From Calcarisporiella thermophila CBS 279.70 (lineage: Eukaryota > Fungi > Calcarisporiellomycota), in assembly GCF_041956535.1 (NCBI RefSeq), contig NW_027192192.1, forward strand, positions 1 through 64,000: a stretch of 64,000 nt of DNA, read 5' to 3'. The notes beneath the pieces were generated by a model. The model had not been told where the DNA came from, ran no database searches, and was given only the letters and a program-made list of their open reading frames with translations. Each line of letters starts with the position of its first letter. The first letter of the stretch is position 1. Shown here one piece after another: positions 2,770-61,270 of the stretch. A program made the position numbers and the translations under genes.

Positions 2770-3720
2770 TTAACCTTTATGCCCTTTTCGCACATGTTCA
2801 TTGTCATAATGCCTAATGAAGTCAAATCGATCAGAAAAAGTTTCAGTACATTCGGGACAGTTGATCTCAAGACGTCCGTGAGACGATGAACGAGATTCGG
2901 ACAAGTTCTACACCATACTACTGAGTAATATCGGACTTATATAGCGAAGAAAAGAAAAAGGACAAACCTGAGATATAATATCTTCAACAAATTGAATTTC
3001 CAACTTGAATCTTGGCAACACGCTACCTCCGCTCACATCTTTCCACTCATGAGAGTAGCGGCGCACACTTCCGTTTCGAATTTTCTTGAATATGTAGATT
3101 TTCTTGTTTTTAGAATCGATCAACCAACCCAACTCAACACCAGCAGGAAAATAGGTCCTTTTGAATTTTTCAGTAAGTTCGGCTAGCTTAGAGGGTCTTG
3201 AAACGTCTTCCACTTCAACCACGAAAATAGGATGAAAAGGCTGGCCTTGAAAAGTATCAAGCTGTCGCTCATCTAAAGCACAGTATGTTCCTTCTGGAGT
3301 AAAAGCGACATCTGGGGCCCTAATCTCTTTCCCCCCCAAGACAGCAAAATTGAAACCTCCTTGAGAACACGTGGGCCTACCATTTTGCTGAGAATAGATA
3401 TTCCAGCGCCTCAATTGACCAAAAATCTCTCCAACAACTAATTCTTTTCTTATTGGTGATTGAGGCATCGGTATAAGCCTACCCTTTGAATCATATTCAA
3501 AGTGGCTAATTGGAAGTTTATCAATCACCAGAGCGTGTGTTTTAAGCCAATCGTTGATTTTCTCAAACTGCTCGATTGTGTAAACGCGATCTGGCCGGTA
3601 GTTGTCAATCAAGTCCGATATCTCACCATTTATTGCGGGCATCGCATCATTTTGTGCTTCTGTCGCCGATGCAGTTGGTAATTGGATGATTTTGTACCGC
3701 GAACGAGCTGGACAAGACAT
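2770..3720 (-). CDS. Uma2/DUF820-family PD-(D/E)XK nuclease with C-terminal C2H2 zinc finger (exons 3720-2968 and 2907-2770)
   Basis: IRAPDVAF..PIFVVEV..YFPAGVELGWLID motifs; a 60-nt phase-0 GT-AG intron (2967-2908) joins an exon reading NLSESRSSSHGRLEINCPECTETFSDRFDFIRHYDNEHVRKGHKG*. Confidence 0.8.
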
Positions 3721-4825: not shown

Positions 4826-5161
4826 CTACTTAGATAAGGTCTCAAGAGCATTGGGACCACATCTGCATGTATCACTTCCAGCATTGCAAGGAAAAGTGCC
4901 ACTGCCTTTCACTTGGATACAACGTTGTTGATCGTAGGGTTGACACCCCATATAAGTACTTATAAGACCATTGGGGGTACAAGTGCACCCGTTGCAAAGA
5001 TCATCACATGTAAATCCCTCTGTTCCAAATGCAGCAATGCATTTCTGATAAGAATATGGACGATCATTAGGATATGGCCTATCGGCGCACCCCATAACTG
5101 TACTCTGGAAAAGCGCAGTGAAAAGTACAAAAATATATACAGCGATGTTGAGTTTTTCCAT
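4826..5161 (-). CDS. Small secreted Cys-rich protein, pacifastin-like (copy 1, STYMGC)
   Basis: Signal peptide; CNGCTC..G..STYMGC motif; two internal Y..xCI...G..F.C repeats; two paralogs in the window. Confidence 0.85.
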   Translation of the reverse strand: MEKLNIAVYIFVLFTALFQSTVMGCADRPYPNDRPYSYQKCIAAFGTEGFTCDDLCNGCTCTPNGLISTYMGCQPYDQQRCIQVKGSGTFPCNAGSDTCRCGPNALETLSK

Positions 5162-5688
5162 AGGCAGATCTAGTTTTGAAATGTGAGAGTGAGCACTTTG
5201 ATTTCGTTGAGGGCCGAAGGAAAGGATATATACTCAGCTTACTCTGTTAAAGCTCAACCAAAAATCGATTTTGTTTTTCGATATACCCAAAACCTATTAT
5301 CATTTACAACTAATTTATAAATTAGTATTGCATTTCCACTATCAAGTAATTAAAGTGTGTCGTGGAATCTGTGAAATTTTCAGATATTACGGAAAGCAGA
5401 AACCTGGCGTAGACTAGATTTTTCAATGATTTATTGTAAACTATTTACAATGAGAGGTCTAGAATAAGAATGAGAATAAAAAATATAAGAAATAAAATAA
5501 TTGAGAGCCGGATGCCAATTCCTACTTGCAGGGGTCGGGATCTGAAGCCGCATCTTTGTCTCGGAATGGGGTTGTTAACCTATTATATAATACAAAACCA
5601 ATTCTTTACAAGGAAAGGATCCAAGTAATAGCCAGGACTAAACTGGATATGTAAATTACCTGATTGGAAAGCAGAGCGATCGTAGGTA

Positions 5689-7018
5689 CAGTTAATCGAA
5701 AGACATAATTTGGTAATTTTACTTCATAATTTAATATCACAGTAAACCCTTGTAAATTATGGATAATAACAATATTATTGAAAATATATACAACACTGAG
5801 GCTAATTTTATTAATATGTGAAACCCGTGTTTAAAAATGATAAAAATTATAATGTTGAGGGGATAAGTTGAAAAAAGTGCTGAAATATCCGTTACGAATA
5901 GGCCAGTGACATATACAGATTTTACAAACCGTCTATTGTTCACTTATTTACTAATGCTTTGTGTGTCTTCCATTTGCATTAAATAATGCACGCATCCGCC
6001 CTGGCATGCTCGCATATGGCTTATAGACATATTCCACATTTATGCTTTCACATTTTTTTCTCAATGCGTTCCCATAGAACATCCTTATTCTTCGGTGGTC
6101 ATTGATAATTGCTTCTGTAATATGCGCACCGAAAGCGGAGGATGGATTTTGCGAAGGAATACAAAGACTGGACAGAAGATGATTGGAAAAGAGCAATATT
6201 CTCTGATGAGACGCAGATTACATTCGCAAATGCAAATGGAAGAGAATACAACTAAAAGCACAAAGGAGAGCCGCTCCGTAGTTGCCATATCAAGCCAACG
6301 CTCAAACAAGGGGATGAGCCTTAAATGGCATGGGGTTGCATCACTTCTCATGGCGTCGGTAACATGTGCCGTATCGGCGGAGGGCTCGACTCCGTATTAT
6401 ACACCACCATCCTCAACGATGATTATCTCGGATCGTTGGAATAATATTTCACAGGTCATATTCCAACGTGACAACGATCCAAAACACATATCAAAGATAA
6501 CCAGAAGATGATTACGACGCAACAGGATAGATGTACTAAAATGGTCTTCGCAGTCTCCAGATCTATATATCATGATGCACATCTGGAGTGAATTGAGGCC
6601 TAGTGTAAGCTAATATTAGAAACCGCTGAAGAATAAGGACGAACTATGGGAACGAATTGAGAAAGAATGGGAAAGCATAGATATAGAATATGTTAGCAAG
6701 CTTTTATGCATGCATGCCAGAGTGGATGCGTTCTGTATATAATGCTAAGGGAGGACATACAAAGTATTAGTAAATAAGTGAACAATATACGATTTGTAAA
6801 AACTGTGTATGTAAATGGCATATTCATATATGCCATTTATTTAAGTATATCTCAATACTTTTTCAACTTAAATCTCCGGCGTTTTGGATTTTCTATTTTA
6901 AACATGGGTGTCATATATTAATAAAACTAGCGTTAATGCCATATAATTTTTAAAGATAATTCCCATCCATAGTATCCAGGGGTTTGCTGAGATATTCAAA
7001 ATGAAAGTTATCAAATTA
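5689..7018. mobile_element. Degenerate Tc1/mariner DNA transposon with fold-back (inverted) arms
   Basis: TA|CAGT left end at 5687-5692; + strand DDE motifs WKRAIFSDE, FQRDNDPKH, KWSSQSPDL and GGHTKY*; 5689-6100 is an inverted copy of 6620-7018. Confidence 0.85.
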
Positions 7019-7224
7019 GCCCTAGTCCTAGTGGAGGCTGCAAAATCGCATCATCAAATGGATTAGATGAGATGGGAAAGCCCCAACTGATATTAAAATT
7101 TGTCATGTCAATTCTAAAGTGTATTATTTTGCGTTCTGCCAAAAGTCGATAGGTGAATAATGGTTGCTGATCCTTCTGCAGCCTTGCAATACATCCAGAC
7201 CTGATATAGGAGGAAAGGCACGAG

Positions 7225-8070
7225 GATATGGTCATCAAATGGACTCAAGATCGGCTGGAAACTCAAAGTGGACACTTCTATTGGACAATTTAGTCGATAG
7301 GATTATCAAGCAGAGATTTCAAAAATTGCCTCGGGAGGATGGGTATACCCTATATCACCCTGACTACTCGTGAGCCGATCTCACTTAGTACGCTACATCG
7401 ATGTGAGAAATGTGAAGAAGGAGGAAGCTCTCAATTACTTTGTCATGATACACATCCAATTGATCGAGAGAAGACAGTTTCGTAACACTTATGAAACGAT
7501 TACGCACATTGAGTTGATGCTGTTTGTAATCAAGCTGGCGTGCTTACGTTGAAAATGCCGCCTCATCTTTCCCCAGTTATTCTGATCAGCTGAAAAAGAA
7601 GAAAGAGATCCCGCTTGCATATAGGTATAAGAAATCAATAGATGATTAAGAGCACATAATAGTAGCGGTTTGGAATATATCTTTCGATCGCGTGCAAGAA
7701 ATTCCACTTTTTTCTACTCGAATAAAACTCCACTTTTTGAGCATCAGTTTTTTGCGCTCGATCTATGCTCAAAGACACGTCCTTAAACAAAGCGCTGGAA
7801 GATATGAAGACGCTCAAGAGGCAATAGCGGTGTTAATTAATTTCTCCATTTTATCAACTACAGTTAACGAAACAGGCATCCACTAAAAGGTATTAAATTT
7901 ATTAAGGATGTATCTTCTCGCGTGTGAAAAAACTTATACTACAATTGAAGGGGAGCAAAAATAAATTGGGCGAGAAAGCTCTCCAAAATTCTCAATCGCG
8001 AGACACGAGGTATTAAGGTATATGATAACTGCGAGAGATTGTTTATGTGGGTACACCTACACATACCCTC
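7225..8070 (+). pseudogene. NB-ARC NLR relic
   Basis: KWTLLLDNLVDRIIKQRFQKLPREDGY matches KCLLLLDNLDDRIAKQMFRMLPREGGY of the 46 kb NLR; EDAQEAIAVLINFS matches the 36 kb NLR; frameshifted. Confidence 0.8.
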
Positions 8071-8578
8071 GAATGCATAGATAAGTCAAATAGACGAAGA
8101 AATTGAATGAACAAATAAAGAAAACGAATACTACATCAACTGAATCTTGAATATAGCTTAAATTATCCTTTTTCTAGTTCGCCTGTTCCTTTATTTTTCT
8201 GTAGGTATACGTGATCTCTGTGTTTATGAGGACATCGGAAATATACAAATTATTAACTTCTATACCATTACATACCTACAAGTATTCAAAAGTTTCCTAT
8301 CATATCAGCCAGTTGCGCAAACCTATTTATAAAGACATCCACCGCTACATTGTTTAAATTCCCTTACACAATGTTATGAGTGAAATTTCAGACGAAATGA
8401 AAAGTCTTGCGAATTCACTAGCAAAAGGGACAGATACAAGAAATACTGTGTTTATTAAGTCATTCAGCAATCCAAAGTGGACCCTAAGATCCGTATAGCC
8501 TCAAATTATAAATTACGTCAATTTCAATTCAATAGATTTTGTAACAAATTTTAAGATGTGACCTAGAGTTATATGGTG

Positions 8579-8920
8579 CTACTTAGGTTTCAAGGTTTCA
8601 AGAGCATTGGGGCCACATCTGCATGTATCACTTCCAGCATTGCAAGGAAAAGTGCCACTTCCTTTCACTTGGATACAACGTTGTTGATCGTAGGGCGGAA
8701 AACACGCCATTAGAGTACTTATAAGACCAGAGGGGGTACAACTGCACTGGTTGCAAAGATCATCACATGTAAATCCCTCTGTTCCAAATGCAGCAATGCA
8801 TTTCTGATAAGAATATGGACGATCATTAGAATATGGCCTATCGGCGCACCCCATAACTGTGCTCTGGGAAAGCACAGTGAAAAGTACGAAAATATATACA
8901 GCGATGTTGAGTTTTTCCAT
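8579..8920 (-). CDS. Small secreted Cys-rich protein, pacifastin-like (copy 2, STLMAC)
   Basis: Near-identical to copy 1 apart from the CNQCSC..STLMAC loop. Confidence 0.85.
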   Translation of the reverse strand: MEKLNIAVYIFVLFTVLSQSTVMGCADRPYSNDRPYSYQKCIAAFGTEGFTCDDLCNQCSCTPSGLISTLMACFPPYDQQRCIQVKGSGTFPCNAGSDTCRCGPNALETLKPK

Positions 8921-9829
8921 AGGCAGATCTAGTTTTAAAATGTGAGAGTGAGTACTTTGATTTCGTTGAGGGCCGAAGGAAAGGATATATAATCAGCTTA
9001 CTCTATTAAAGTTCAGCCAAAAATCGATTTTGTTTTTTTTATAGCCAAAAACCTACTTTTACAACAAATATATAAGTTAGTAATACATTTCCACTATAAA
9101 GTAAATAAAGTGTGCCGTGGAATCTTTACGAAATTTTCAGATATTACGGAAAGCAAAAACCTGGCGTAGGCTAGATTTTTCAATAATTTATTATAAACTC
9201 TTTATACTGAGAAGCACAGAAAAAAGAAAGAAAAAAAATAAATGATGAACATCATGAAAAATAATTGAAAGCCGGAATATGTCGATCCTTGCAAGGGTCG
9301 AGAACTTACCAATTCTTTACAGGGAGTGGTTCTAGGTAATAAATTTATGTAAATTACCCTAATTGGAAAACGAGCGATCATTAGATATATAAAAGGAATA
9401 TGAGGTTTGGATATAGCGATGTTTTGCATTATGGATAAGCTACAGCATTACAGTATAAGAGGTAAGTACAGTTTTAAATAAACTAGCAACTAACTACATT
9501 CATCAGCAATAATGACCAATTTTGCTGCGAGACAAATCACTCGAGCCGTTCGATGGTAACCCAGGCTATTGAAATCTAAAACAGATCGAGGTTTAAAAGA
9601 ACTGAATAAGATATATCATTTGCTAACTTTTCTTTCGTCTCGTCCCAAAGTTCTTGCGCTTCAGTTGTGTTTTTGCATACCCCCTGTTGTCTTACTTCGG
9701 TACAATCCGTTTACATCGCGGTAAAATAGCTTTCGCGGGTGCTTTTTTTGACAGATTGTTTGGACTATTCTCTTTATCCTGGCCTATTATCGACACAGTC
9801 GTTCTGCTGTCCTAATAAAAATCTTAAGG

Positions 9830-10152
9830 AATTCGCATAAAAATCTTAGCCAAAATTTAAGGTTCCAAATAGAGACCAAAACAATTTCCCCAACTGGAGA
9901 GCTTCTGGCAACATCGTACCTCAAAGCCTACACAAATGCTCGATGTATACCTGGCAGAGACCCAAAAACACATCATTGGACTTGCAAGTCCCTCCTATTA
10001 CTCCTCAAAAATCACAGATCGGAACAGGGAGAATTACTCAAAATGAACTCGATGTCACCCTCGAGAATACCATACACCTCATCCACACGGCGGCAAAGAT
10101 CAAAGAATTACAAAGGAGGTTAAACTTCCCCAGGGAATGGTACGAGATGTAA
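9830..10152 (+). mobile_element. Possible non-LTR retrotransposon 3' relic
   Basis: One frame reads PTGELLATSYLKAYTNARCIPG..KTHHWTC, resembling a LINE C-terminal Zn-knuckle region; it begins where unit 2 similarity to unit 3 breaks. Confidence 0.35.
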
Positions 10153-10410
10153 AAGCCGTATAATAAAAGTGTTCACTTCATCATTCATTCAATTTTCCTT
10201 TATATGCAATATTTTGAGAAAATTTTCAGACGGATTGGAGTCTTGCGATATAACGATTAGAAGGCGCAAGTACGGGAAAAAATGTTTTTATTAATTCTGT
10301 CAAAGTGGATCGCTGCTATCTCAAACTATAATATTATATTTATACATTCCAAAAACTCATTGAATAGATTGCGCAACAAAATTAAGAGTATGGTCCAGAT
10401 TTAAATTGAA

Positions 10411-10725
10411 CTACTCTATGCATTCAATTGCTTCGGGACCACATCGGCAACTAGCATTTCCAGCATTGCAAGGCCATGTGCCATGGCCTTTCACTTGGAT
10501 ACAACGTTGATAATTGTAGCTTGGGCACCCCTTCTTAGTACTGATAACGCCATGGAGGCTACAACTGCACGAGTTGCAAAGATCTTCACATGTAAATCCT
10601 TTTGTTCCAAATGCTTTAATGCATATATCGTAATTATATGGACGATTGCTGCACTCAATAGCTGTGCACTGAAATGGTGCAGTGAAGAGCATGAAAATAG
10701 ATAAAATGATGACGAGTTTTCCCAT
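10411..10725 (-). CDS. Small secreted Cys-rich protein, pacifastin-like (copy 3, STKKGC)
   Basis: Signal peptide and the same Cys spacing; more diverged paralog. Confidence 0.85.
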   Translation of the reverse strand: MGKLVIILSIFMLFTAPFQCTAIECSNRPYNYDICIKAFGTKGFTCEDLCNSCSCSLHGVISTKKGCPSYNYQRCIQVKGHGTWPCNAGNASCRCGPEAIECIE

Positions 10726-11429
10726 AAGCAGACCTGACTTTTAAACGTGAGAGTAAGCACTATGAAGGCCGAAGGCTGGGATTGCCTATTATCATCTACA
10801 TCAATGATATAAATTAGGGGTTGCGATCTCACAATAGAGTAATTTGTGAAGAGTAACCATTACGAGATTTTTAGAAATCACAGAAAGCAGAGGCCTGGCG
10901 TAGACAAACTTTTTCAATGACTTAATGTGAATTGGCTACGATAAGAAGCGTAGCAAGAAAAAAAGAGAAAAAAACGGAAAAAAAATAAAAGAACGAAAAA
11001 TAATTGAATGGCGAGTGAGGTATTGTCAATCCCTACTTGCAAGGGTCGGGATTTGAAGCCGCAATTTTCTTCTGGAATGGAGTTGTAACCCCACTTAAAA
11101 ACGCACAAACCATTTCTTAAAGGGTAATACAGGTAATAGCCAGGGCTAAATTAGAGAATGTAAATCACTTGATTGGAAAAGTGAGCGATCATTAGGTATA
11201 TAAAAGGAATATGAGGATATGGATATATTCATATTTTTGCAATAAGTTACAGCATTACTGCATAGAGAGTAATAGTAGGTTAAATAAACTAATGTCTAAC
11301 CACATTCATCAGTAATAATTATCAATCTTGATGCGGGACCAATTACTCGAGCCATTCGATGGTAACCTAAGCAGATTATTAACAGCTAAAACAGATTGGG
11401 AATTATAAGAACTGAACAAGGTTAAATCT

Positions 11430-18037: not shown

Positions 18038-19372
18038 ATGCGTTACGGCTCAATCATTAAGCACATCATCATCTTCATCGTTGCCTTATCATTTTTAAAC
18101 GACGGCGTGAAGGCGGCCAACCCTTATAAGAAATGGGTAATGGACAAGATCAAATCAAAGGCTAAAGACCAGATAAAACCTCGCCCAAAAGATAAAGAGG
18201 CAAATGAATTCTTCACGGCTGCTAGAGATATTGTTTCGGCCTTTAGAACACCGAAGCCTGGCATAGGTCAGCTTTATTCTAAGAAATTCGCAGACGTACT
18301 TATAGGGTTAGACGAGCTCTGTCGGCAGAAACGCACTGATTTCTTTTGTAAAGCTCTTGCAACGGCACAGATGATTCCCGATAGAGGTTATCAGTGGCAT
18401 ACAGGTGTATCGTCGCAAGATATTGAGGAACGTCGCGTCATATCAGTTGAAAGTGATGTTTATCAAGAACAGCTTAGGGATTGTATAGTCAATCTGGAAG
18501 GAAGGACAGATAGGATGTGCCATGAAGCAATCTTAAGTAGAATATTCCTCCCTCGACTCTGTGTGGCCGACCGCTCGTACGTAAATAGCAAAGCTGTAGA
18601 CGAATTTATCGATGACACGATTAACGAGTTAGCGGAATCGCCTTACTGCAATAATGGCCTTGGAATTTTCTCGCCTGATAAAAAGTCCTGTTTAAAGCTT
18701 CAAAAGTCAAAGGAGATCCTTATAGAAGTGTTCAACGCGATGGGTTTTTCTAGATTCGACTTATATTTAAACGCCACAGAGACTTCATCAAGTATGATCG
18801 GTTATTATAACGAGTGCACGGATAAAGATTTGGACTGTTATTACGGCTACAGAAAATCCCGAGAGCATTATCCATATATGAACTCAATAGGCGAATACAG
18901 ATGGAAGTACGCCGCCGACGCTGTAAATGGGTTGGAGAGATGCTGGGGATTCCTCGACAACGACGGTAGACCGGTGAACGAGGAAACACTAGGAAACCTG
19001 TCAGAAAATGTCAAGCCTGAAGTATGTGGAGACAAATTCACCCATTATAGGAAAAATCAGTGCAGTACGAATTGGCCCTGTATTCCTCCTAAGTCGATGT
19101 GCAGCCATTGTAAAAAGGGGAAGAACTGTAGCCCTTTTAATCATAATGCAAAAGCCTGTCCGCGTAAATTCACCAATTTCACACCCAATCAATGTAAAAC
19201 TGCTTTCCCTTGTTCTTTAGGTAGAAAGCCATATTGCACAGCTTGCACCGATGATTGGGAACATTGCGATCCGTCACCAAATAGATCTGACTACTCTGTA
19301 AACGATGATGTGGCAAATGATGATAATGTTGAAATATTTGACACCTCTAACAGTACATCGGTCGGCAATTAA
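18038..19372 (+). CDS. Orphan secreted Cys-rich protein, 444 aa
   Basis: Long intronless ORF with signal peptide, TATAAAA at ~17985 and two C-terminal Cys repeats. Confidence 0.8.
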   Translation: MRYGSIIKHIIIFIVALSFLNDGVKAANPYKKWVMDKIKSKAKDQIKPRPKDKEANEFFTAARDIVSAFRTPKPGIGQLYSKKFADVLIGLDELCRQKRTDFFCKALATAQMIPDRGYQWHTGVSSQDIEERRVISVESDVYQEQLRDCIVNLEGRTDRMCHEAILSRIFLPRLCVADRSYVNSKAVDEFIDDTINELAESPYCNNGLGIFSPDKKSCLKLQKSKEILIEVFNAMGFSRFDLYLNATETSSSMIGYYNECTDKDLDCYYGYRKSREHYPYMNSIGEYRWKYAADAVNGLERCWGFLDNDGRPVNEETLGNLSENVKPEVCGDKFTHYRKNQCSTNWPCIPPKSMCSHCKKGKNCSPFNHNAKACPRKFTNFTPNQCKTAFPCSLGRKPYCTACTDDWEHCDPSPNRSDYSVNDDVANDDNVEIFDTSNSTSVGN

Positions 19373-20183: not shown

Positions 20184-21560
20184 CTAGTGATCTATGGGAG
20201 TATACTTTCCTCCAAACCAGCCATCTCCTGCTTGGGCTTTGATTAAATCATATTCCCCTCTCCATTTTTTGGTTATTATACGGCGTACTTCATTGGATAT
20301 GTTGGCATCTTTATGTGCTTGGAAATAGGACTGGGATTTGTCGATGAGATTATCCACGCCCAACCCGCCAATACCAAGAAGTTGCGCTGGAGTTTTGTCG
20401 TCAAGCAGTTGCATATTAAGAATCGTTTTTAGTGCACCACCGATATCACCCTTGAGAGCCGATGTAAATAGATCCAACCCACTCGCTAAAGCATTCACTA
20501 TGAACTTATCCCACGCGATTGTGTTAGGGGGTTTATAGTTGGGGCAACTCTTATCTTCCCAGCTATAAAACTTGTAGAAATTGGATAGTTGCGCATCTTG
20601 GCGGAATTCTCCAGGGGGGAAGAAATCCTCCAGAGACCTTGGTGGTTTAATTTGCGGAAAGTTATTTCTGTCGTAGTTACATCCTGGAAAATCAAAGCAG
20701 TATGTTTTTCCCTTGCACGTGTCCGTCCGCGGCAACTTGTTCAGCTTGACTACGTTTTCTCTATAACACTTGACGTCGCTATCCGGACAAGCCAATATGG
20801 CTGCCAGATTTACGGCCCACCCGTGCAGTCTCACAAATGCATTCGGATTGTTAAATTCAGACATATTCGATGGAAGCAACCCGTCGGCCATCAAGATACG
20901 CTTATATACTGCCTTTTGTTCTGCGGTCTTATAGTGCGTCAATATATCGAAGCCTGTCCCAGAATCCGGAAGCCAAAACTTTAACCACGGGGAATCGGAT
21001 TTAGGCAAGTTCAAGCTCAGCACCATCTTGCCGACAGGGTCTTCCGTATACGGGATATCCTGGTAATTAACAAGGCCCCATTTACCATCCCAGACTACGA
21101 TTCCTTTGCTACACGTGGCTTGAGGACAAAATGGAGAACCTTCCCTGCAGGATGCACTTGGCCTGTTGGAAGCAGTGATTTCGATCAAAATGTTCATCTC
21201 TTCTTTGGCTTTTGACTTGCTGTCCCAACCTCTTTCCGCACAAGAGTACCCCAATTCTTGCTCGTAATTAAAGGTCATTGGTACCGCTGGATAATAAAAC
21301 TGGGGAGCATCGACATTTTCGACGGTATTATTATTCCTAGGGATTGCTTGGGTAGCCGTGGTAGAGGGAGCTTTCTTACTACGGTCGATGGGAATGGAGG
21401 GTGTACTAGTCACTGTGCTCATAGAATTGCTGCCACGCGTATTGATGCTTGCCGTGGGGCTGCTAGTTGTGGCAGACCTTCCCCGTGTGTTGACGGTGGT
21501 GGGAGGAGCAGCAATAACAGAAGTGGTAAAGAGTGCAAGTAGTATTAGAGTTTTCATCAT
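20184..21560 (-). CDS. Orphan secreted protein, 458 aa, with Thr/Ser-rich N-terminus
   Basis: Long intronless ORF; signal peptide MMKTLILLALFTTSVIA; upstream TATA-like sequence at ~21600. Confidence 0.8.
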   Translation of the reverse strand: MMKTLILLALFTTSVIAAPPTTVNTRGRSATTSSPTASINTRGSNSMSTVTSTPSIPIDRSKKAPSTTATQAIPRNNNTVENVDAPQFYYPAVPMTFNYEQELGYSCAERGWDSKSKAKEEMNILIEITASNRPSASCREGSPFCPQATCSKGIVVWDGKWGLVNYQDIPYTEDPVGKMVLSLNLPKSDSPWLKFWLPDSGTGFDILTHYKTAEQKAVYKRILMADGLLPSNMSEFNNPNAFVRLHGWAVNLAAILACPDSDVKCYRENVVKLNKLPRTDTCKGKTYCFDFPGCNYDRNNFPQIKPPRSLEDFFPPGEFRQDAQLSNFYKFYSWEDKSCPNYKPPNTIAWDKFIVNALASGLDLFTSALKGDIGGALKTILNMQLLDDKTPAQLLGIGGLGVDNLIDKSQSYFQAHKDANISNEVRRIITKKWRGEYDLIKAQAGDGWFGGKYTPIDH

Positions 21561-35721: not shown

Positions 35722-37583
35722 TGCTTGGCTTGAAACGCGCTCAAAATGGCTACTTCTCTTGGACAACTTGGACAACAGAATCGCCAAACAGCTATTTCAA
35801 ATATTGCCTCACAAAGGTGGACATATCATTTTGACTACACGTGTTCCGATCCCATCTAGGTGTGCAACGATCATTAGTGTGGTAAATATGAAGGAAGAAG
35901 AGGCGCCCTTGGCACTGCTTGGTGAAGAGATGTATTCAATTGATAGGGGGGTACTCGGTTCCATAACGCGTACCAAATAGTTGCGCAGTTTGAGTTTATG
36001 CCACTTGCAATAGAAATTGCGCGCGCCTACATCGAAAACACCGCTTCTCTTTCCAGAGCTATCTTGATCAGTTGAAAAGGAATCGAGAAAAATTGCTTTC
36101 GTATAAGGATGAAGAGTCGCTAGGAAATTATCAGCACACAATAGCAACAGTTTGGAACATTTCTTTTGATCGTGTGCGAGAATTCCCGGCAACTGTGCCG
36201 ATACTTGAAATTTGCACTTTTCTTCATCCAGATGAAATTCCAACACGTCTCTTTGAGCGTCAATTTGTTGCACTCGATCTTCACTCAAAGTCACAAACAT
36301 TTTTAGACAAACTACTAGCATTTGAAGATGTCCGAACAGCAATAGCGGTATTGAACAAATCCTCGCTTGTCACAATTACAACTAATGAGGGCGACAGCAA
36401 TAATAAGGAGATAGTATGAAATACATTAAAGATGCATCGACTCGTGCGTGAAGTGATCTATGCTAGAATTGAGGATGATAGAAAGATAAATTGGGCACGG
36501 AAACTAACTAAAGTGCTCAATCTCGAGACAGAAGATCTAAATGGTTATAATACCAAAGACAGGCCAATTATGCAAATGTACCTTTCGCACATACGATATT
36601 TCGTGGAATTGCTCGAGAATCTCAGCGAAAGAGCTATGCATTGCAAAGACCTGGTTAAATTGTTGAATAGCACAGTATTATACCTGCGCGCAAATGGAAT
36701 ATACGATAGCATACGAAAGCTAGCTGAGCTTTCGGTAATCATCAGTGGAAATATTTATGGCCCTGAGCACCCCGACACAGCCTTATCGGTTCACAGTCTG
36801 GCCAGCCTCTACTGGAGTCAGGGCAAGTACGAACAGGCGGAGCCGCTGTACCAGCGAGTTCTCGCAATCCAGGAGAAGACGTTGGGACCTGAGCACCCCA
36901 ACATGGCCTTGCCGGTTAACAGTCTGGCCAGCCTCTACTCAGAACAGGGCAAGTATGAACAAGCGGAGCTTCTCTACCAGCGAGCTCTCGTCATCCAGGA
37001 GAAGACGTTGGGACCTGAGCACCCCAGCACGGCCTTGTCGGTTCACGGTCTGGCCATCCTCTACTCAGAACAGGGCAAGTACGAACTAGCAGAGTCGCTC
37101 TGCCAGCGAGCCCTCGCCATCCGGGAGAAGACGTTGGGATCTGAGCACCCCAACACGGCATCATCGGTTAATGGTCTGGCTAGCCTCTACTCAAAACAGG
37201 GCAAGTACGGACAGGCGGAGCCGCTGTACCAGCGAGCTCTCGCCATCCGGGAAAAGACGTTGGGACCTGAGCACCCCGACACGGCCTCATCGGTTCACAA
37301 TCTGGCCAGCCTCTACTCAGAACAGGGCCAGTACGAACAAGCGGAGCCGCTGTACCAGCGAGCCCTCGCCATCCGGGAGAAGACGCTGGGACCTGAGCAC
37401 CCCGACACGGCCTTGTCGGTTAACGGTCTGGCCAACCTCTACACAAATCAAGACAAATGTAAAGAGGCTAAATCATTGTTTCAACGATCTTTGGAGATCC
37501 GGAAGAAAGCCCTTGGACCTGAGCATTCAGATACAATTGAATCTAGAAGCGCTCATACCCATTCGTTTTGTAATATATCCTAA
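35722..37583 (+). pseudogene. NB-ARC-TPR NLR: 5' part and P-loop missing, NB-ARC disrupted, TPR ORF 36432-37583 open
   Basis: LLLLDNLD, ILTTR, MPLAI and MHRLV motifs; frameshifts and an in-frame TGA at 36417; six LGPEHP-type 42-aa TPRs. Confidence 0.88.
36757..37520 (+). repeat. 126-bp TPR-coding tandem repeat (~6 units, high internal identity)
   Basis: Recurrent ggacctgagcacccc...cagggcaagtacgaacaggcggagccgctgtaccagcgag at 126-nt spacing. Confidence 0.92.
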
Positions 37584-57005: not shown

Positions 57006-60000
57006 ATGCAGTCTTCTAGTATCAATACGATTCGTGCCGATAAACAAGGGGTAGTTCTCGCGGGAATTACAAACGGAAACGTTAGTGTTACTGTTAATGG
57101 CAAGTAAAAATTAAAATCGTCAGGAACAAATGGCAACATTACTGCAGTTGAATAATTTTTGGATTCTTGGAATATTTAGCAAATAGCTCAAGTAACCCTA
57201 CTCTTAGCTCTAGAGTCTTCAAAGTGCCTCCACGAAATACGCGATATGTTAACCGGTTTCAACTAATGAAGCATTTGGAAGATGTAATTGAGATGATGAA
57301 AAAGAATCAAAACTATGAACCTATTGCGTTATGTGGACTTGGAGGAGTAGGAAAATCGCAAGTAGTGCTGGAGTATTGTTACCGTAAAAAAAGTGAGTTT
57401 CGGTATATCTTTTGGTTGGAAGCCGACAAAGAATCGACCTTGCAGAGTGCATTTGTTGACGCTGCGCGGAGGCTCAATTTAGTACCTATTGGTTCGCATA
57501 TCGTTAATCCTGGGGACGTTTTGTCTTATGTGATCGAATGGCTGCAAAATAATGACGGATGGTTAATTGTTTATGATAATGCGGATGATTTTTCTCTTGG
57601 AAACACTTCGAATCCTTACTTTTTGCAGACAAACTATTTCCCACAAAATGGGAATGGAGTCATTTTGATGACGACTCGCCTCCGTAACATCGTGCACCGA
57701 GCAGTGCCCATTGATATGGAAGATTATCCAATGGAGGACGAAGCTGCATTGAAACTGCTTGGAAAAGATGCAAGTGTACCATACGCTCTGGAGCTTATTA
57801 ATGAGCTTGAATATCTGCCTCTCGCTATCGATTTAGCTGGTGCTTCTATGAAAATTGATAACCATCTGTCGCCTGAAAAATATCTCATTAGCTATAGGAG
57901 TTCTGCAGTCAGATGTCTCAGACATTTGGATCTTCAGGAGATAGCAGAGCTAACCGGTTCCGCCTACGGAAAAACTGTACTGACTGTGTGGGTGGACACA
58001 TTTCGCCGGATAAAACAAAGGAGTGCTTTAGCGGCGAGTCTCCTCCGGACAATTGCTTTGCTTTATCCTGACAATATCCCAGAAGATTTATTATATAAAC
58101 TCTCTCTGCTGGATCTTGGCTCCACTATTGAAGATGCTCGTAGAGATATTAACAAGGCCTTAAAACTATTAAAATCATTCGCGCTGTTACGGGAGACTCT
58201 AAGCGAAACTAACAATACGATGTTACATTCCAATCGATTTATGTCTATCCATCGGGTAGTTCAGAAGGTTACAATTTTGAAAATAGGAGAGGGGGAAAAA
58301 AGAGAACGGTACAAATGGGTTATTTTAGCACTGCGTCAAGTCATACCTGAGAGCTATGATGACTCTGACGAGCATTCGAGAAAAGCGTTGGAGATATATG
58401 CATCCCAGATCCGATATATTTGCCAGCAGTATGCACTATGTAAAGAGGAGCAGGAGAAACTCGAGGATTGCTCGAGCATACAGGAGGCGTTCGTATCTAT
58501 ACTCATTCCCACTGTTATATTCTTCGTAGGCAGGACTCTGTTTGAAGATGCCGAGTATCTTGCAAGGTTAGCAACCTCTGCCTCAGGAACATTAAAGGAT
58601 TCAAATTATCTTGCTAGAGCCGAGAGCAGTCTATGCTACCTTTATTGGATGAAAGGAGATTTTGTGTTAGCGGAAAAACATTGCGAAAATTCGTTTGAAA
58701 TTCGAGAAAAATTGTTAGGAATTGGTCATGAGCTTACAAGATCATCTCTGCACTACATGGGTTTCGTTAAGAGAAAACTGAATAAATATGGGACTGGGTT
58801 AAATAAATTATACCTAGCTGCCAGTGCACATTCGAATTTTCAAAAAGTGAAGTACGAATTTGGAAGAATCGATTTTACCCCTCTTCATCGCGCTGTCCGG
58901 TATTATGATACCGAAAATATACGAAATATTGCCAATAAATATAGACATTATGTAGATACAAGCGATGCACAAGGAGCCACTCCTCTACATCAGGCTACAA
59001 AACGGGGTAAAGAAGAAGTTGTGAGGATGTTGATTTCAGAGTTTGGAGCAGATGCAAATACTATAGACAGCAGTGGAAGAAGTCTATTGCATTGGGCTGC
59101 AAAAGGAGGAAACGTTGAAGTTGTTAGGATGTTAGTGAAAGAGTTTGGTGCTGATCCGAAGAGAAGAGACGATCGGGAGTCAACTCCCCTGCACTTGGCT
59201 GCAGAACGAGGAAGAATAGCGGTCGTAAGGGAGCTAGTGGTTGAGTTTGGGGCAGATGTGAATAGTAAAGATATCCATGGTTATACCCCATTGCACAAGG
59301 CTGTTGAAAGAGGAAATGTAGAAGTTGTGACGGCGCTGGTTACCGAATTCGGGGCAAATGTGAATAGTAGAGCGAGTGAGGGAGAAACTCCGTTGCATCG
59401 GGCCGTACAAAGTGAAAAAAACGAAATTGTGATGATGTTGGTGTCCGAGTTCAGAGCAGATATAAGAATTAAAGACAACGAGGGATGGACCCCATTGCAT
59501 TGGGCCGCATTTCGATGCAACAGCAAAGCAGTGAAAGTGTTGGTAGCTGAGTTTGGGGCAGATGTGAATACAATAAATAGTAAGGGGAAAACTCCATTGC
59601 ACTTGGCGGCAGGGTCCGGCAGTAATGAATTAGTTTTGATGCTGCTTACTGAACTTAAAGCGAGTGTGAATATTAAAGATAATGATGGAAATACTTCATT
59701 ACACTTGGCTATAGAGAATGATGCTAAAGATGCTAACAACATAGTGAAGATATTGGTGACTGTGGGTAGAGCTGATTTGAATATTAAAAACAAGGCGGGA
59801 ACAACTCCATTTCATTTGATAGTATCTAGTTGTTATGAAGACTTGAAAGTGTTAGTTACAGAGTTCGGAGCAGATGTGAATGTTATAGACTGCAATGGTA
59901 GAACTCTTTTGCATTGGGCTGCAATGCAGTTTTATAGTGGAGCTGTAGAAATGTTAGTTAAGGAGTTTGGTGCAGATGTGAATATTAGAGATAATAATGG

Positions 60001-61270
60001 AATCACTCCATTGCATTGGGCTGCACGCTACTCAAATATGGAAGTTGTGAGAATGTTGGTGGATAAGCATGGGGCAGATGTGAATATTATAGATAACAAT
60101 GGGAGCATTCCGCTATATTATGCTGCAGATAGTGGTAGAAATGAAGTTGTGAAAATGTTGGTGACTGAATTTGGGGCAAATGTAAAAATCAAGGACAATA
60201 ACGGGTGGACCCCGTTGCATAGGGCTGCAATTCGATGTAGCGGAGAAGTAGTGGGTATGTTGATAGCAGAGTCCGAGACAGGTGTGAATATAATTGATAG
60301 CAAGGGATATTCACCATTGCATTGGGCTACAGTTTACGGAAATGATGAGGTTGTGAGGAGATTGGTGATAGAGTTCAAAGCAGACGTAAATATTCAAGAC
60401 AACAATGGAGCAACCCCATTGCATTGGGCAGCACTTAGGTGTAGTGGCGAAGTCGTGAGGATATTAGTGACTAAGGGCAAAGGAGATGTAAATTGTAAAG
60501 ATATGAAAGGACGAACTCCATTGCATTGGGCTGCAACTTGTGATAAGACTGAGACTATGAGGGTATTAATTAAGGAGTTTGATGTAGACGAGAATAGTGA
60601 GGATAAGAAGGGAAAAACTCCATTGCACTGGGCCGCAAAATATGATAGAATTGAAGCTGTGAGAGTTTTGGTCAAGGAATTTGGTGCAAAAGTGAATATT
60701 AAAGATAAGATTGGGAGAAATCCATTTTATCTGGCTACAAGATGGGGGAAAGAAGATGTTGCGGGGGTGTTGGTGACAGAGTTCGGAGCAGAAGTAAATA
60801 TTAAAGATATCAAAGGCAGGACCCCATTGCATTGGGCAGCGTTGAAATGTGGTGACGATTTCTTAAAAATGTTGGTGATTGAGGGAAGGGTAGATGTTAA
60901 TAGTAAAGACGATGAAGGAGCAACTCCGTTTTTGTGGGCAGTTTTTGGAAATAGAAGCGATGTTATAAGGATGCTTGTGAGAGAGTTTGGAGTAGATGTG
61001 GATAGTAGAGATAGGATGAGAAGAACTCCATTGCACTGGGCTGCAGCATGGGACAAGGCTGAAATTGCGAGGGTGTTGGTAAAGGAGTTTGGCGCAGGCG
61101 TGAATATTGAAGACAATGAAGGGAGAACTCCATTGTTCATTGCCGTAGAGAGGGGAAATAAAAAAGTAGTGGAGGTGTTCGTGACAGAGTTCGGGACAAA
61201 TGTGAATGTGATAACCAACCATGGAGAAATATCGCTTTACGGAGTGCGGAATGAGGATGAAGCTAATTAA
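57006..61270 (+). CDS. NLR: short N-terminal amyloid-like motif, NB-ARC, TPR-like helices, ~23 ankyrin repeats (exon 1 57006-57099; GC-AG intron)
   Basis: GLGGVGKS, WLIVYDNAD, LMTTR, LPLAI and IHRVVQ motifs; TPLHWAA repeats; exon 1 is conserved in the paralog. Confidence 0.92.

Follow-up and report, generated by a model that had tools for sequence, protein, structure and literature searches.

A tandem triplet of predicted secreted pacifastin-like proteins with a rearranged cysteine pattern and differing predicted P1 residues in the fungus Calcarisporiella thermophila

Pacifastins have long been regarded as an arthropod family with a fixed three-disulfide pattern. A locus of the thermophilic soil fungus Calcarisporiella thermophila raises the question of whether proteins in which that pattern is broken can still be pacifastins and, if so, whether they can still act as protease inhibitors. 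The window analysed here, a stretch of 64,000 nucleotides at the start of contig NW_027192192.1 of strain CBS 279.70 (assembly GCF_041956535.1), holds within positions 4826-10725 three complete, intronless open reading frames (ORFs) on the minus strand, which we call W1, W2 and W3 (copies 1 to 3; Table 1). An earlier note, made from the sequence alone, had read them as fungal, pacifastin-like secreted peptides. Their source is indeed a fungus: an RPB2 exon of 859 amino acids from this genome matches the NCBI RPB2 of C. thermophila at 100% identity. Both the coordinates and the motifs quoted in the note (STYMGC, STLMAC, STKKGC and FTCDDLC) proved exact, with FTCDDLC in copies 1 and 2 and FTCEDLC in copy 3. 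The amino acid identity to W1 is 91% for W2 and 61% for W3, and a genome-wide search found these three to be the sole copies in the 28 Mb genome; they are a lineage-specific tandem triplication in C. thermophila. We consider it very probable that W1-W3 are homologous to pacifastin, the relationship appearing real yet distant, and within the pacifastin superfamily they fall into a small branch of fungal proteins.

The likeness to pacifastin was borne out by profile searches and by hhalign. The top match of each copy was Pfam Pacifastin_I (PF05375, MEROPS family I19; gathering cut-off 27.9 bits), at 16.2 bits for W1, 18.9 for W2 and 14.7 for W3 (E 1e-3 to 2.5e-2); relatives from the same clade score above the cut-off (P0001 48.9, P0005 32.6 and P0007 58.8 bits), and three clade members carry the automatic UniProt name 'Pacifastin domain-containing protein'. 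Locust inhibitors ranked first when a profile of the three copies was run against the PDB (E 0.015-0.37), as did pacifastin clusters in a search with protein-language-model features, albeit with a low score (0.82). The three-protein profile was also run against 1.84 billion representatives, where it gave 29 matches at E <= 1e-3; one group among these consists of small secreted fungal proteins sharing the variant CNxCxC..G..ST...C, the other of canonical multi-domain proteins of Mytilus, Octopus and a chiton with pacifastin and von Willebrand factor type C (VWC) domains (E 1.7e-7 to 3.7e-4). A fungal-only profile of 39 positions, built from 31 fungal variant domains, gave 14 matches in the PDB at E <= 1. 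These are without exception inhibitors of the pacifastin family, with 2xtt as the best (E 1.7e-4) and with the P2 Thr and P1 in register; hhalign against 28 canonical domains returned a probability of 98.3% (E 1.2e-14). Furthermore, canonical CT and variant ST domains occur within single chains, namely in P0007 of Smittium and in the metagenomic protein P0019. Other families fared worse. VWC (PF00093) and VWC2L gave no match for W1-W3 even at E <= 10, and VWC overlaps pacifastin matches in the mollusc proteins only, while GASA/snakin (PF02704) reached 10.4-13.4 bits (E 0.09-0.78), under its 27-bit cut-off and weaker than Pacifastin_I in every copy. A word-index homologue search found no match with copy 1 and, with the family alignment, one new member, P0164.

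An AlphaFold2 model of mature W3 built on a 31-row alignment reached a predicted local distance difference test (pLDDT) score of 93.2, and each of its halves consists of a short helix bearing the first cysteine and then a beta hairpin at CxC...G..S; the three paralogues alone gave an unusable model (pLDDT 44.5). In a Foldseek search of the PDB with the W3 model, locust inhibitors complexed with trypsin or chymotrypsin dominate the list, with template modelling (TM) scores by target of 0.48-0.58 and a root-mean-square deviation of 1.8-2.8 Å over about 31 residues, at E > 1.

It is in the cysteines that these proteins depart from the known family. Canonical pacifastins form the bridges Cys1-Cys4, Cys2-Cys6 and Cys3-Cys5, the last of which braces the reactive loop at P3 (PMC13388995). 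W1-W3 do not follow this six-cysteine pattern, given that their Cys5 is replaced by Ser, as it is in 27/31 fungal domains; in the remaining four it gives way to Glu, Thr, Gln or Pro, so that Cys is found at this position in none. At the same time, an extra cysteine lies four residues ahead of Cys2 in 29/31 fungal domains and keeps the count per domain at six. The two exceptions, P0012 and P0164, have lost Cys3 too (CNSISC and CNLISC). This joint loss of the extra cysteine and Cys3 is a single evolutionary event and suggests a bridge between the two, which probably replaces Cys3-Cys5. The rewired disulfides that the earlier note had proposed, from a fifth cysteine turned to Ser and an additional one upstream, are therefore supported by two relatives in which the putative partners disappear jointly. 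Outside these positions the two domains (P0012:55-93 and P0164:55-93, from related proteins; GLSGDGCNSISC) are intact, with Lys at P1, and represent a natural two-disulfide version. The core Cys2-Asn-x-Cys3-x-Cys4 is otherwise well preserved: its Asn is found in 31/31 domains and the Gly of the Cys4-Cys5 loop in 27/31, and both are present in W1-W3.

Most of the predicted reactive loop is recognisable. The Tyr, Leu and Lys that had been taken for P1 align with the P1 of solved locust inhibitors (STKKGC, for instance, falls on CTRKGC of SGTI), and the whole Thr-P1-P1'-x-Cys6 segment is in register with them; P3, a Cys in those inhibitors, is Ser here, so the usual brace is absent. All 31 fungal domains have Thr at P2 and Cys at P3'. 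Met, Lys and Arg prevail at P1' and Ala and Gly at P2', while P1 is Leu in ten, Lys in seven, Glu in four, Arg in four and Tyr in two, with singletons making up the rest. As aligned, this loop frame and P1 repertoire are the same as those of canonical inhibitors. The best sequence-profile matches in the PDB are the locust inhibitors SGPI-1/SGTI, PMP-C/LCMI-II and PMP-D2/LCMI-I (PDB 2xtt, 1kj0/2f91, 1gl1, 1gl0 and 2vu8), which have in common with W1-W3 the CNxCxC core, the hinge Gly, the T-P1-P1'-x-C loop and the Pro that follows it. The loops can be near-identical, with STLMAC and STYMGCQP comparing with locust CTLMGCQP, and STKKGCPS with CTRKGCPP. The differences lie in the Ser at Cys5 (P3), the extra Cys four residues ahead of Cys2, a predicted helical N-terminal part and a truncated second domain; moreover, W1-W3 are fungal and have one inhibitor-type domain per gene (inhibition being predicted), whereas the locust inhibitors are arthropod and are made from a multi-domain precursor.

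Judging from this conserved loop anatomy, we give somewhat better than an even chance to canonical inhibition of S1 (chymotrypsin-fold) serine proteases with a specificity set by P1. W1-W3 would act as substrate-like, tight-binding canonical inhibitors, with the loop S-T-P1-P1'-x-C docking in the protease active site. The complete domain, which keeps the Cys2-Asn-x-Cys3-x-Cys4 core, the hinge Gly, the invariant P2 Thr and Cys6 at P3', would present this loop, and P1 would set the preference: Tyr in W1 and Leu in W2 for chymotrypsin- or elastase-like enzymes, Lys in W3 for trypsin-like ones. Following duplication, the loop region would have changed fastest, giving rise to a small panel of specificities.

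The comparison of the two closest copies bears on this last step. As had been noticed from the sequence, the substitutions between W1 and W2 cluster near the loop, 7 of the 12 differing columns falling in one 18-column window (permutation P = 0.012). We defined a patch from Cys2 to two residues beyond Cys6 and calculated the proportions of nonsynonymous (pN) and synonymous (pS) differences inside and outside it. Within the patch, pN was 0.198-0.209 and pS about 0.13; in the remainder of the mature protein pN was 0.022 and pS 0.106, which indicates purifying selection outside the patch. Nonsynonymous change is about 9-fold higher in the patch than in the rest (Fisher P = 1.7e-4). In two patch codons, Asn/Ser64 (AAT/TCT; 4968-4970 and 8727-8729) and the P1 codon Tyr/Leu70 (TAT/CTA; 4952-4954 and 8711-8713), all three bases differ between W1 and W2. 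W3 agrees with neither version, nor do the patch codons of W1 or W2 in general match those of W3, for which reason gene conversion from that copy was rejected as the origin of the patch. The coding sequences of W1 and W2 are 94% identical and their flanks 74-84%. Overall, the pair displays locally accelerated protein change on a purifying background.

Several observations weigh against protease inhibition by W1-W3, however. C. thermophila is a saprobe with no known host (ecology from PMC10079182). The Cys3-Cys5 bridge that was lost is the one that braces the loop of canonical pacifastins (PMC13388995), and a loop untethered at P3 could belong to a poor inhibitor or to a mere substrate. The number of cysteines in W1 and W2 is odd, and P1 is not the most variable single column of the family among the 31 fungal domains. 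When patch pN was set against gene-wide pS, the difference was not significant (Fisher P = 0.19) and the omega of the patch, at about 1.5, was not significantly greater than 1; relaxed constraint in the patch may be at work instead. Of the diversifying inhibitor panel that the earlier note had envisaged, the concentration of substitutions around the loop has thus been upheld, while the test for positive selection gave no significant result. There is a substantial, if smaller, chance that the proteins descend from pacifastin but have lost inhibition and serve another extracellular role, for instance that of a toxin or channel blocker, a binding module, or an antimicrobial or signalling peptide; the surface of the fast-changing loop would then recognise a partner other than a protease. 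Some locust pacifastin peptides have been reported as calcium-channel blockers. Apart from the missing brace, such a loss would fit with the N-terminal part being predicted as a helix in the AlphaFold2 model, not the usual strand or hairpin, with pN lying near pS across the whole mature protein when W1 or W2 is compared with W3, and with the frequent occurrence of non-arthropod pacifastin-like domains within matrix-type VWC proteins (PMC13388995). Yet none of the 31 fungal domains lacks the reactive-site frame (Thr always at P2, Met, Lys or Arg at P1', a small P2', Cys always at P3'), and P1 is mainly Leu, Lys, Arg, Glu or Tyr, the classic specificity residues; such conservation is hard to account for without a protease partner.

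Other points concern descent rather than function. Each of W1-W3 scores under the Pfam Pacifastin_I cut-off. In the structural searches Foldseek returned no significant row from the PDB with the W3 model (E > 0.4), two runs of VIA-align, the second one wide, gave nothing at Z >= 2, and the matches of an ESM Atlas shape search, though they include pacifastin clusters, all have TM < 0.5. These results should be read as uninformative rather than negative because the domain is only about 35 residues long. Together with the fact that short cysteine-rich motifs can inflate profile scores, sub-threshold Pfam scores and weak structural matches are what one would expect of convergence, that is, of an unrelated small cysteine-rich fungal family sharing CNxCxC...T...C by chance. 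We nevertheless deem this improbable: pacifastin was ranked first by three independent kinds of search, the fungal-only profile matches pacifastins alone in the PDB, the hhalign probability is as given above, P0001, P0005 and P0007 exceed the Pfam cut-off, and canonical and variant domains adjoin each other in P0007 and P0019. Even less credible is that the ORFs are non-functional, decaying duplicates in a repeat-rich, AT-rich region. The region does have a GC content of 37% and transposon relics between the copies, and an exact-sequence look-up of the W2 product found no called gene on record, in a collection which may leave out records of the window's own genome. Against this stand three intact frames with start, signal peptide and stop, the retention of all ten core cysteines, a pN/pS of about 0.2 outside the patch (W1 vs W2), a coding sequence that is more similar between these copies than its flanks, and full-length homologues in Lobosporangium.

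How widespread is this variant? Small secreted relatives were found in Lobosporangium, Linnemannia, Actinomortierella, Ramicandelaber and Smittium, as well as in Claviceps, Hirsutella, Ophiocordyceps, Cordyceps and Mariannaea. The closest full-length ones (49% identity, E 4.7e-24) are P0002 of Lobosporangium transversale (ORZ27863.1 / XP_021885566.1), itself bearing the automatic UniProt pacifastin name, and its two tandem neighbours. Like W1-W3, these genes are intronless and have the two-domain architecture, the Ser variant and FxCDDLCN; unlike W1-W3, their proteins are without the N-terminal extra Cys. They form a tandem triplet on MCFF01000003.1 (L013:6001-6294, 6988-7281 and 7602-7895) with Glu, Asp and Lys at the predicted P1; the third copy is absent from the called genes listed at that locus. 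Given that W1-W3 constitute one clade in the family tree, the duplications in Calcarisporiella and Lobosporangium appear to be independent, and arrays with differing P1 would therefore have arisen at least twice. It is conceivable, though we regard it as doubtful, that this rewired, mostly fungal clade still inhibits canonically and that both arrays were independently re-tuned at P1 under diversifying selection, as inhibitor panels of saprobic, early-diverging fungi in conflicts with microbes or grazers.

More distant relatives are built differently. Proteins of Hirsutella minnesotensis (KJZ68120.1/KJZ69397.1), Claviceps, Smittium simulii (PVU89611.1), Ophiocordyceps, Linnemannia, Actinomortierella and Ramicandelaber share the Ser-variant domain and the extra Cys, and in the multi-domain ones P1 varies between domains of one protein (e.g., Leu and Arg in Hirsutella). 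Unlike W1-W3, these have two to four full tandem domains or an added N-terminal module with four or five cysteines. In the three-module relatives (P0010-P0016, P0024, P0026 and P0029; Hypocreales, Mortierellomycota and Ramicandelaber) this module occupies the first 30 residues, reads CP..YG.CN.C...A(L/I)TR..C with a nearly invariant Thr-Arg, and aligns with canonical pacifastin domains at an hhalign probability of 82%; it may be a further-reduced inhibitor module. The metagenomic protein P0019 (JGI 3300027987, L014:6001-7719), with 572 amino acids, a lipoprotein-like N-terminus and a bacterial-type gene context, contains seven [AS]T...C loops (Ser or Ala for Cys5), most of them with the extra Cys before DGCN, as well as one canonical CT domain. 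Its context implies that the Cys5-less variant is not confined to fungi. Myxococcota clusters bearing Pacifastin_I are also listed in the Atlas.

If W1-W3 do inhibit proteases, which ones would they meet? In the literature C. thermophila is described as a saprobe and a thermophile that is sister to all other Mucoromycotina (PMC10079182). Since the fungus is described as a saprobe, the host or predator proteases suggested by the earlier note, such as those of the insect prophenoloxidase cascade, find no support as targets. The genome itself contains about ten S1 protease loci, none of them linked to the inhibitor locus. Two encode complete secreted S1 proteases (contig 7:855417-856073, L007:1477-2463; contig 16:704371-705018, L008:1387-2379). 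The residue at the base of their S1 pocket is Gly or Ser, not Asp; the suggested specificity is chymotrypsin- or elastase-like, making them candidate endogenous targets of W1 and W2. With so many S1 loci of the fungus's own, two of these secreted, we see endogenous or microbial targets as no less probable. We consider the chances of foreign proteases (from bacteria, other fungi or grazing invertebrates) and of the fungus's own secreted S1 proteases to be roughly equal.

Pacifastin-like domains outside arthropods are not without precedent. Rodriguez-Aguilar et al. (Sci Rep, May 2026; PMC13388995) described 'ancestral-type' domains in Fungi, Bacteria and molluscs, including 45 fungal proteins found by structure only, with a P1 rich in Lys and Glu outside Metazoa. 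Their survey rejected structure-only candidates without the canonical Cys1-Cys6 spacing and the Cys3-Cys5 bridge, and the W1-W3 variant falls outside its definition for this reason; as far as its supplements could be consulted, neither Calcarisporiella nor Lobosporangium is named in them. The domains reported there have a beta-hairpin N-terminal extension, whereas that of W1-W3 is a predicted helix. In the open literature we found no paper tying pacifastin to the fungal genera listed above, nor a description of a Cys5-less, rewired and mainly fungal branch, of the two-domain architecture or of lineage-specific, P1-switching tandem arrays. What makes this branch of interest is that about 30 related fungal domains have dropped the Cys3-Cys5 brace while keeping the other loop features, with a new cysteine in compensation. 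Should they be inhibitory, they would show how much of the scaffold canonical inhibition can spare, supply inhibitor engineering with scaffolds about 40 residues long from a thermophile, and offer a simple natural test of the P1 rule through three paralogues that carry Tyr, Leu or Lys there and a parallel trio that carries Glu, Asp or Lys. Should they not be, an inhibitor fold would have been reused for another purpose.

The remaining features of the proteins concern their architecture (Table 1). Each has a hydrophobic N-terminus, with a mean Kyte-Doolittle value of 2.3-2.5 over residues 4-18. The C-terminal half aligns with domain 1 at 97.1% probability and is devoid of Cys2-Asn and of the entire reactive loop, which leaves one inhibitor-type domain and a truncated repeat per protein. 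Past residue 24 there are 11 cysteines in W1, 11 in W2 and 12 in W3. Ten of these form a conserved core; the extras are the N-terminal Cys of W1-W3 and a C-terminal Cys of W3 and of Lt1 from Lobosporangium. The N-terminal one accounts for the odd count of W1 and W2, in which an unpaired Cys lies at the mature N-terminus; W3 has a matching C-terminal Cys. This suggests that in W1 and W2 the residue stays as a free thiol, links two chains into a covalent dimer or is removed by cleavage behind it.

Table 1. Features of the W1-W3 array; positions are those of the 64,000-nucleotide window
Feature	Position	Strand	Description
Gene W1 (copy 1)	4826-5161	-	111 amino acids; signal peptide, full pacifastin-like domain and truncated second domain; predicted P1-P1' Tyr70-Met71
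Gene W2 (copy 2)	8579-8920	-	113 amino acids; architecture as W1; predicted P1-P1' Leu70-Met71
Gene W3 (copy 3)	10411-10725	-	104 amino acids; architecture as W1 with an additional C-terminal Cys; predicted P1-P1' Lys64-Lys65
W1 predicted signal peptide	5090-5161	-	Residues 1-24, ending VMG; cleavage site from the -3/-1 rule alone
W2 predicted signal peptide	8849-8920	-	Residues 1-24
W3 predicted signal peptide region	10654-10725	-	Residues 1-24, including Cys20; exact cleavage site uncertain
W1 domain 1	4934-5050	-	Cys5-to-Ser pacifastin-like; six Cys: Cys1, extra Cys, Cys2, Cys3, Cys4, Cys6
W2 domain 1	8690-8809	-	As W1 domain 1
W3 domain 1	10516-10632	-	As W1 domain 1
W1 predicted reactive-site loop	4943-4960	-	S-T-Y-M-G-C (P3 to P3'); aligned with solved inhibitors
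W2 predicted reactive-site loop	8702-8719	-	S-T-L-M-A-C; aligned with solved inhibitors
W3 predicted reactive-site loop	10525-10542	-	S-T-K-K-G-C; aligned with solved inhibitors
W1 domain 2	4829-4936	-	Domain 1 repeated in truncated form, with four Cys but neither CN core nor reactive loop
W2 domain 2	8582-8692	-	As W1 domain 2
W3 domain 2	10414-10518	-	As W1 domain 2, with an extra Cys at residue 102
Tandem duplication unit 1	4565-5486		Gene and conserved 3' and 5' flanks (repeat families D1-D4, D6-D8)
Tandem duplication unit 2	8365-9566		Repeated gene and flanks
Tandem duplication unit 3	10153-11372		Repeated gene and flanks

The array stands in an AT-rich stretch, with its 37% GC comparing with 43.5% for the whole window. 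An inverted-repeat transposon relic separates units 1 and 2, where nested inverted repeats at 5771-6961, with arms of 61-124 nucleotides that are 74-83% complementary, explain the longer spacing between these units. The array is closely preceded, towards the nearby end of the contig, by a relic ORF of reverse transcriptase/RNase H (492-1796) and by one encoding a domain of the putative restriction endonuclease Uma2 (2908-3720). Two convergent ORFs further along (18038-19372 and 20184-21560; 444 and 458 amino acids) gave no Pfam match at E <= 0.001. The array sits in an accessory region rich in transposons and NOD-like receptors (NLRs), the NLR-type genes or relics of the window comprising a tetratricopeptide repeat (TPR) array at 36432-37583, an NB-ARC domain with about 18 ankyrin repeats at 57167-61270, and DUF7779 with ankyrin repeats at 61800-63680.

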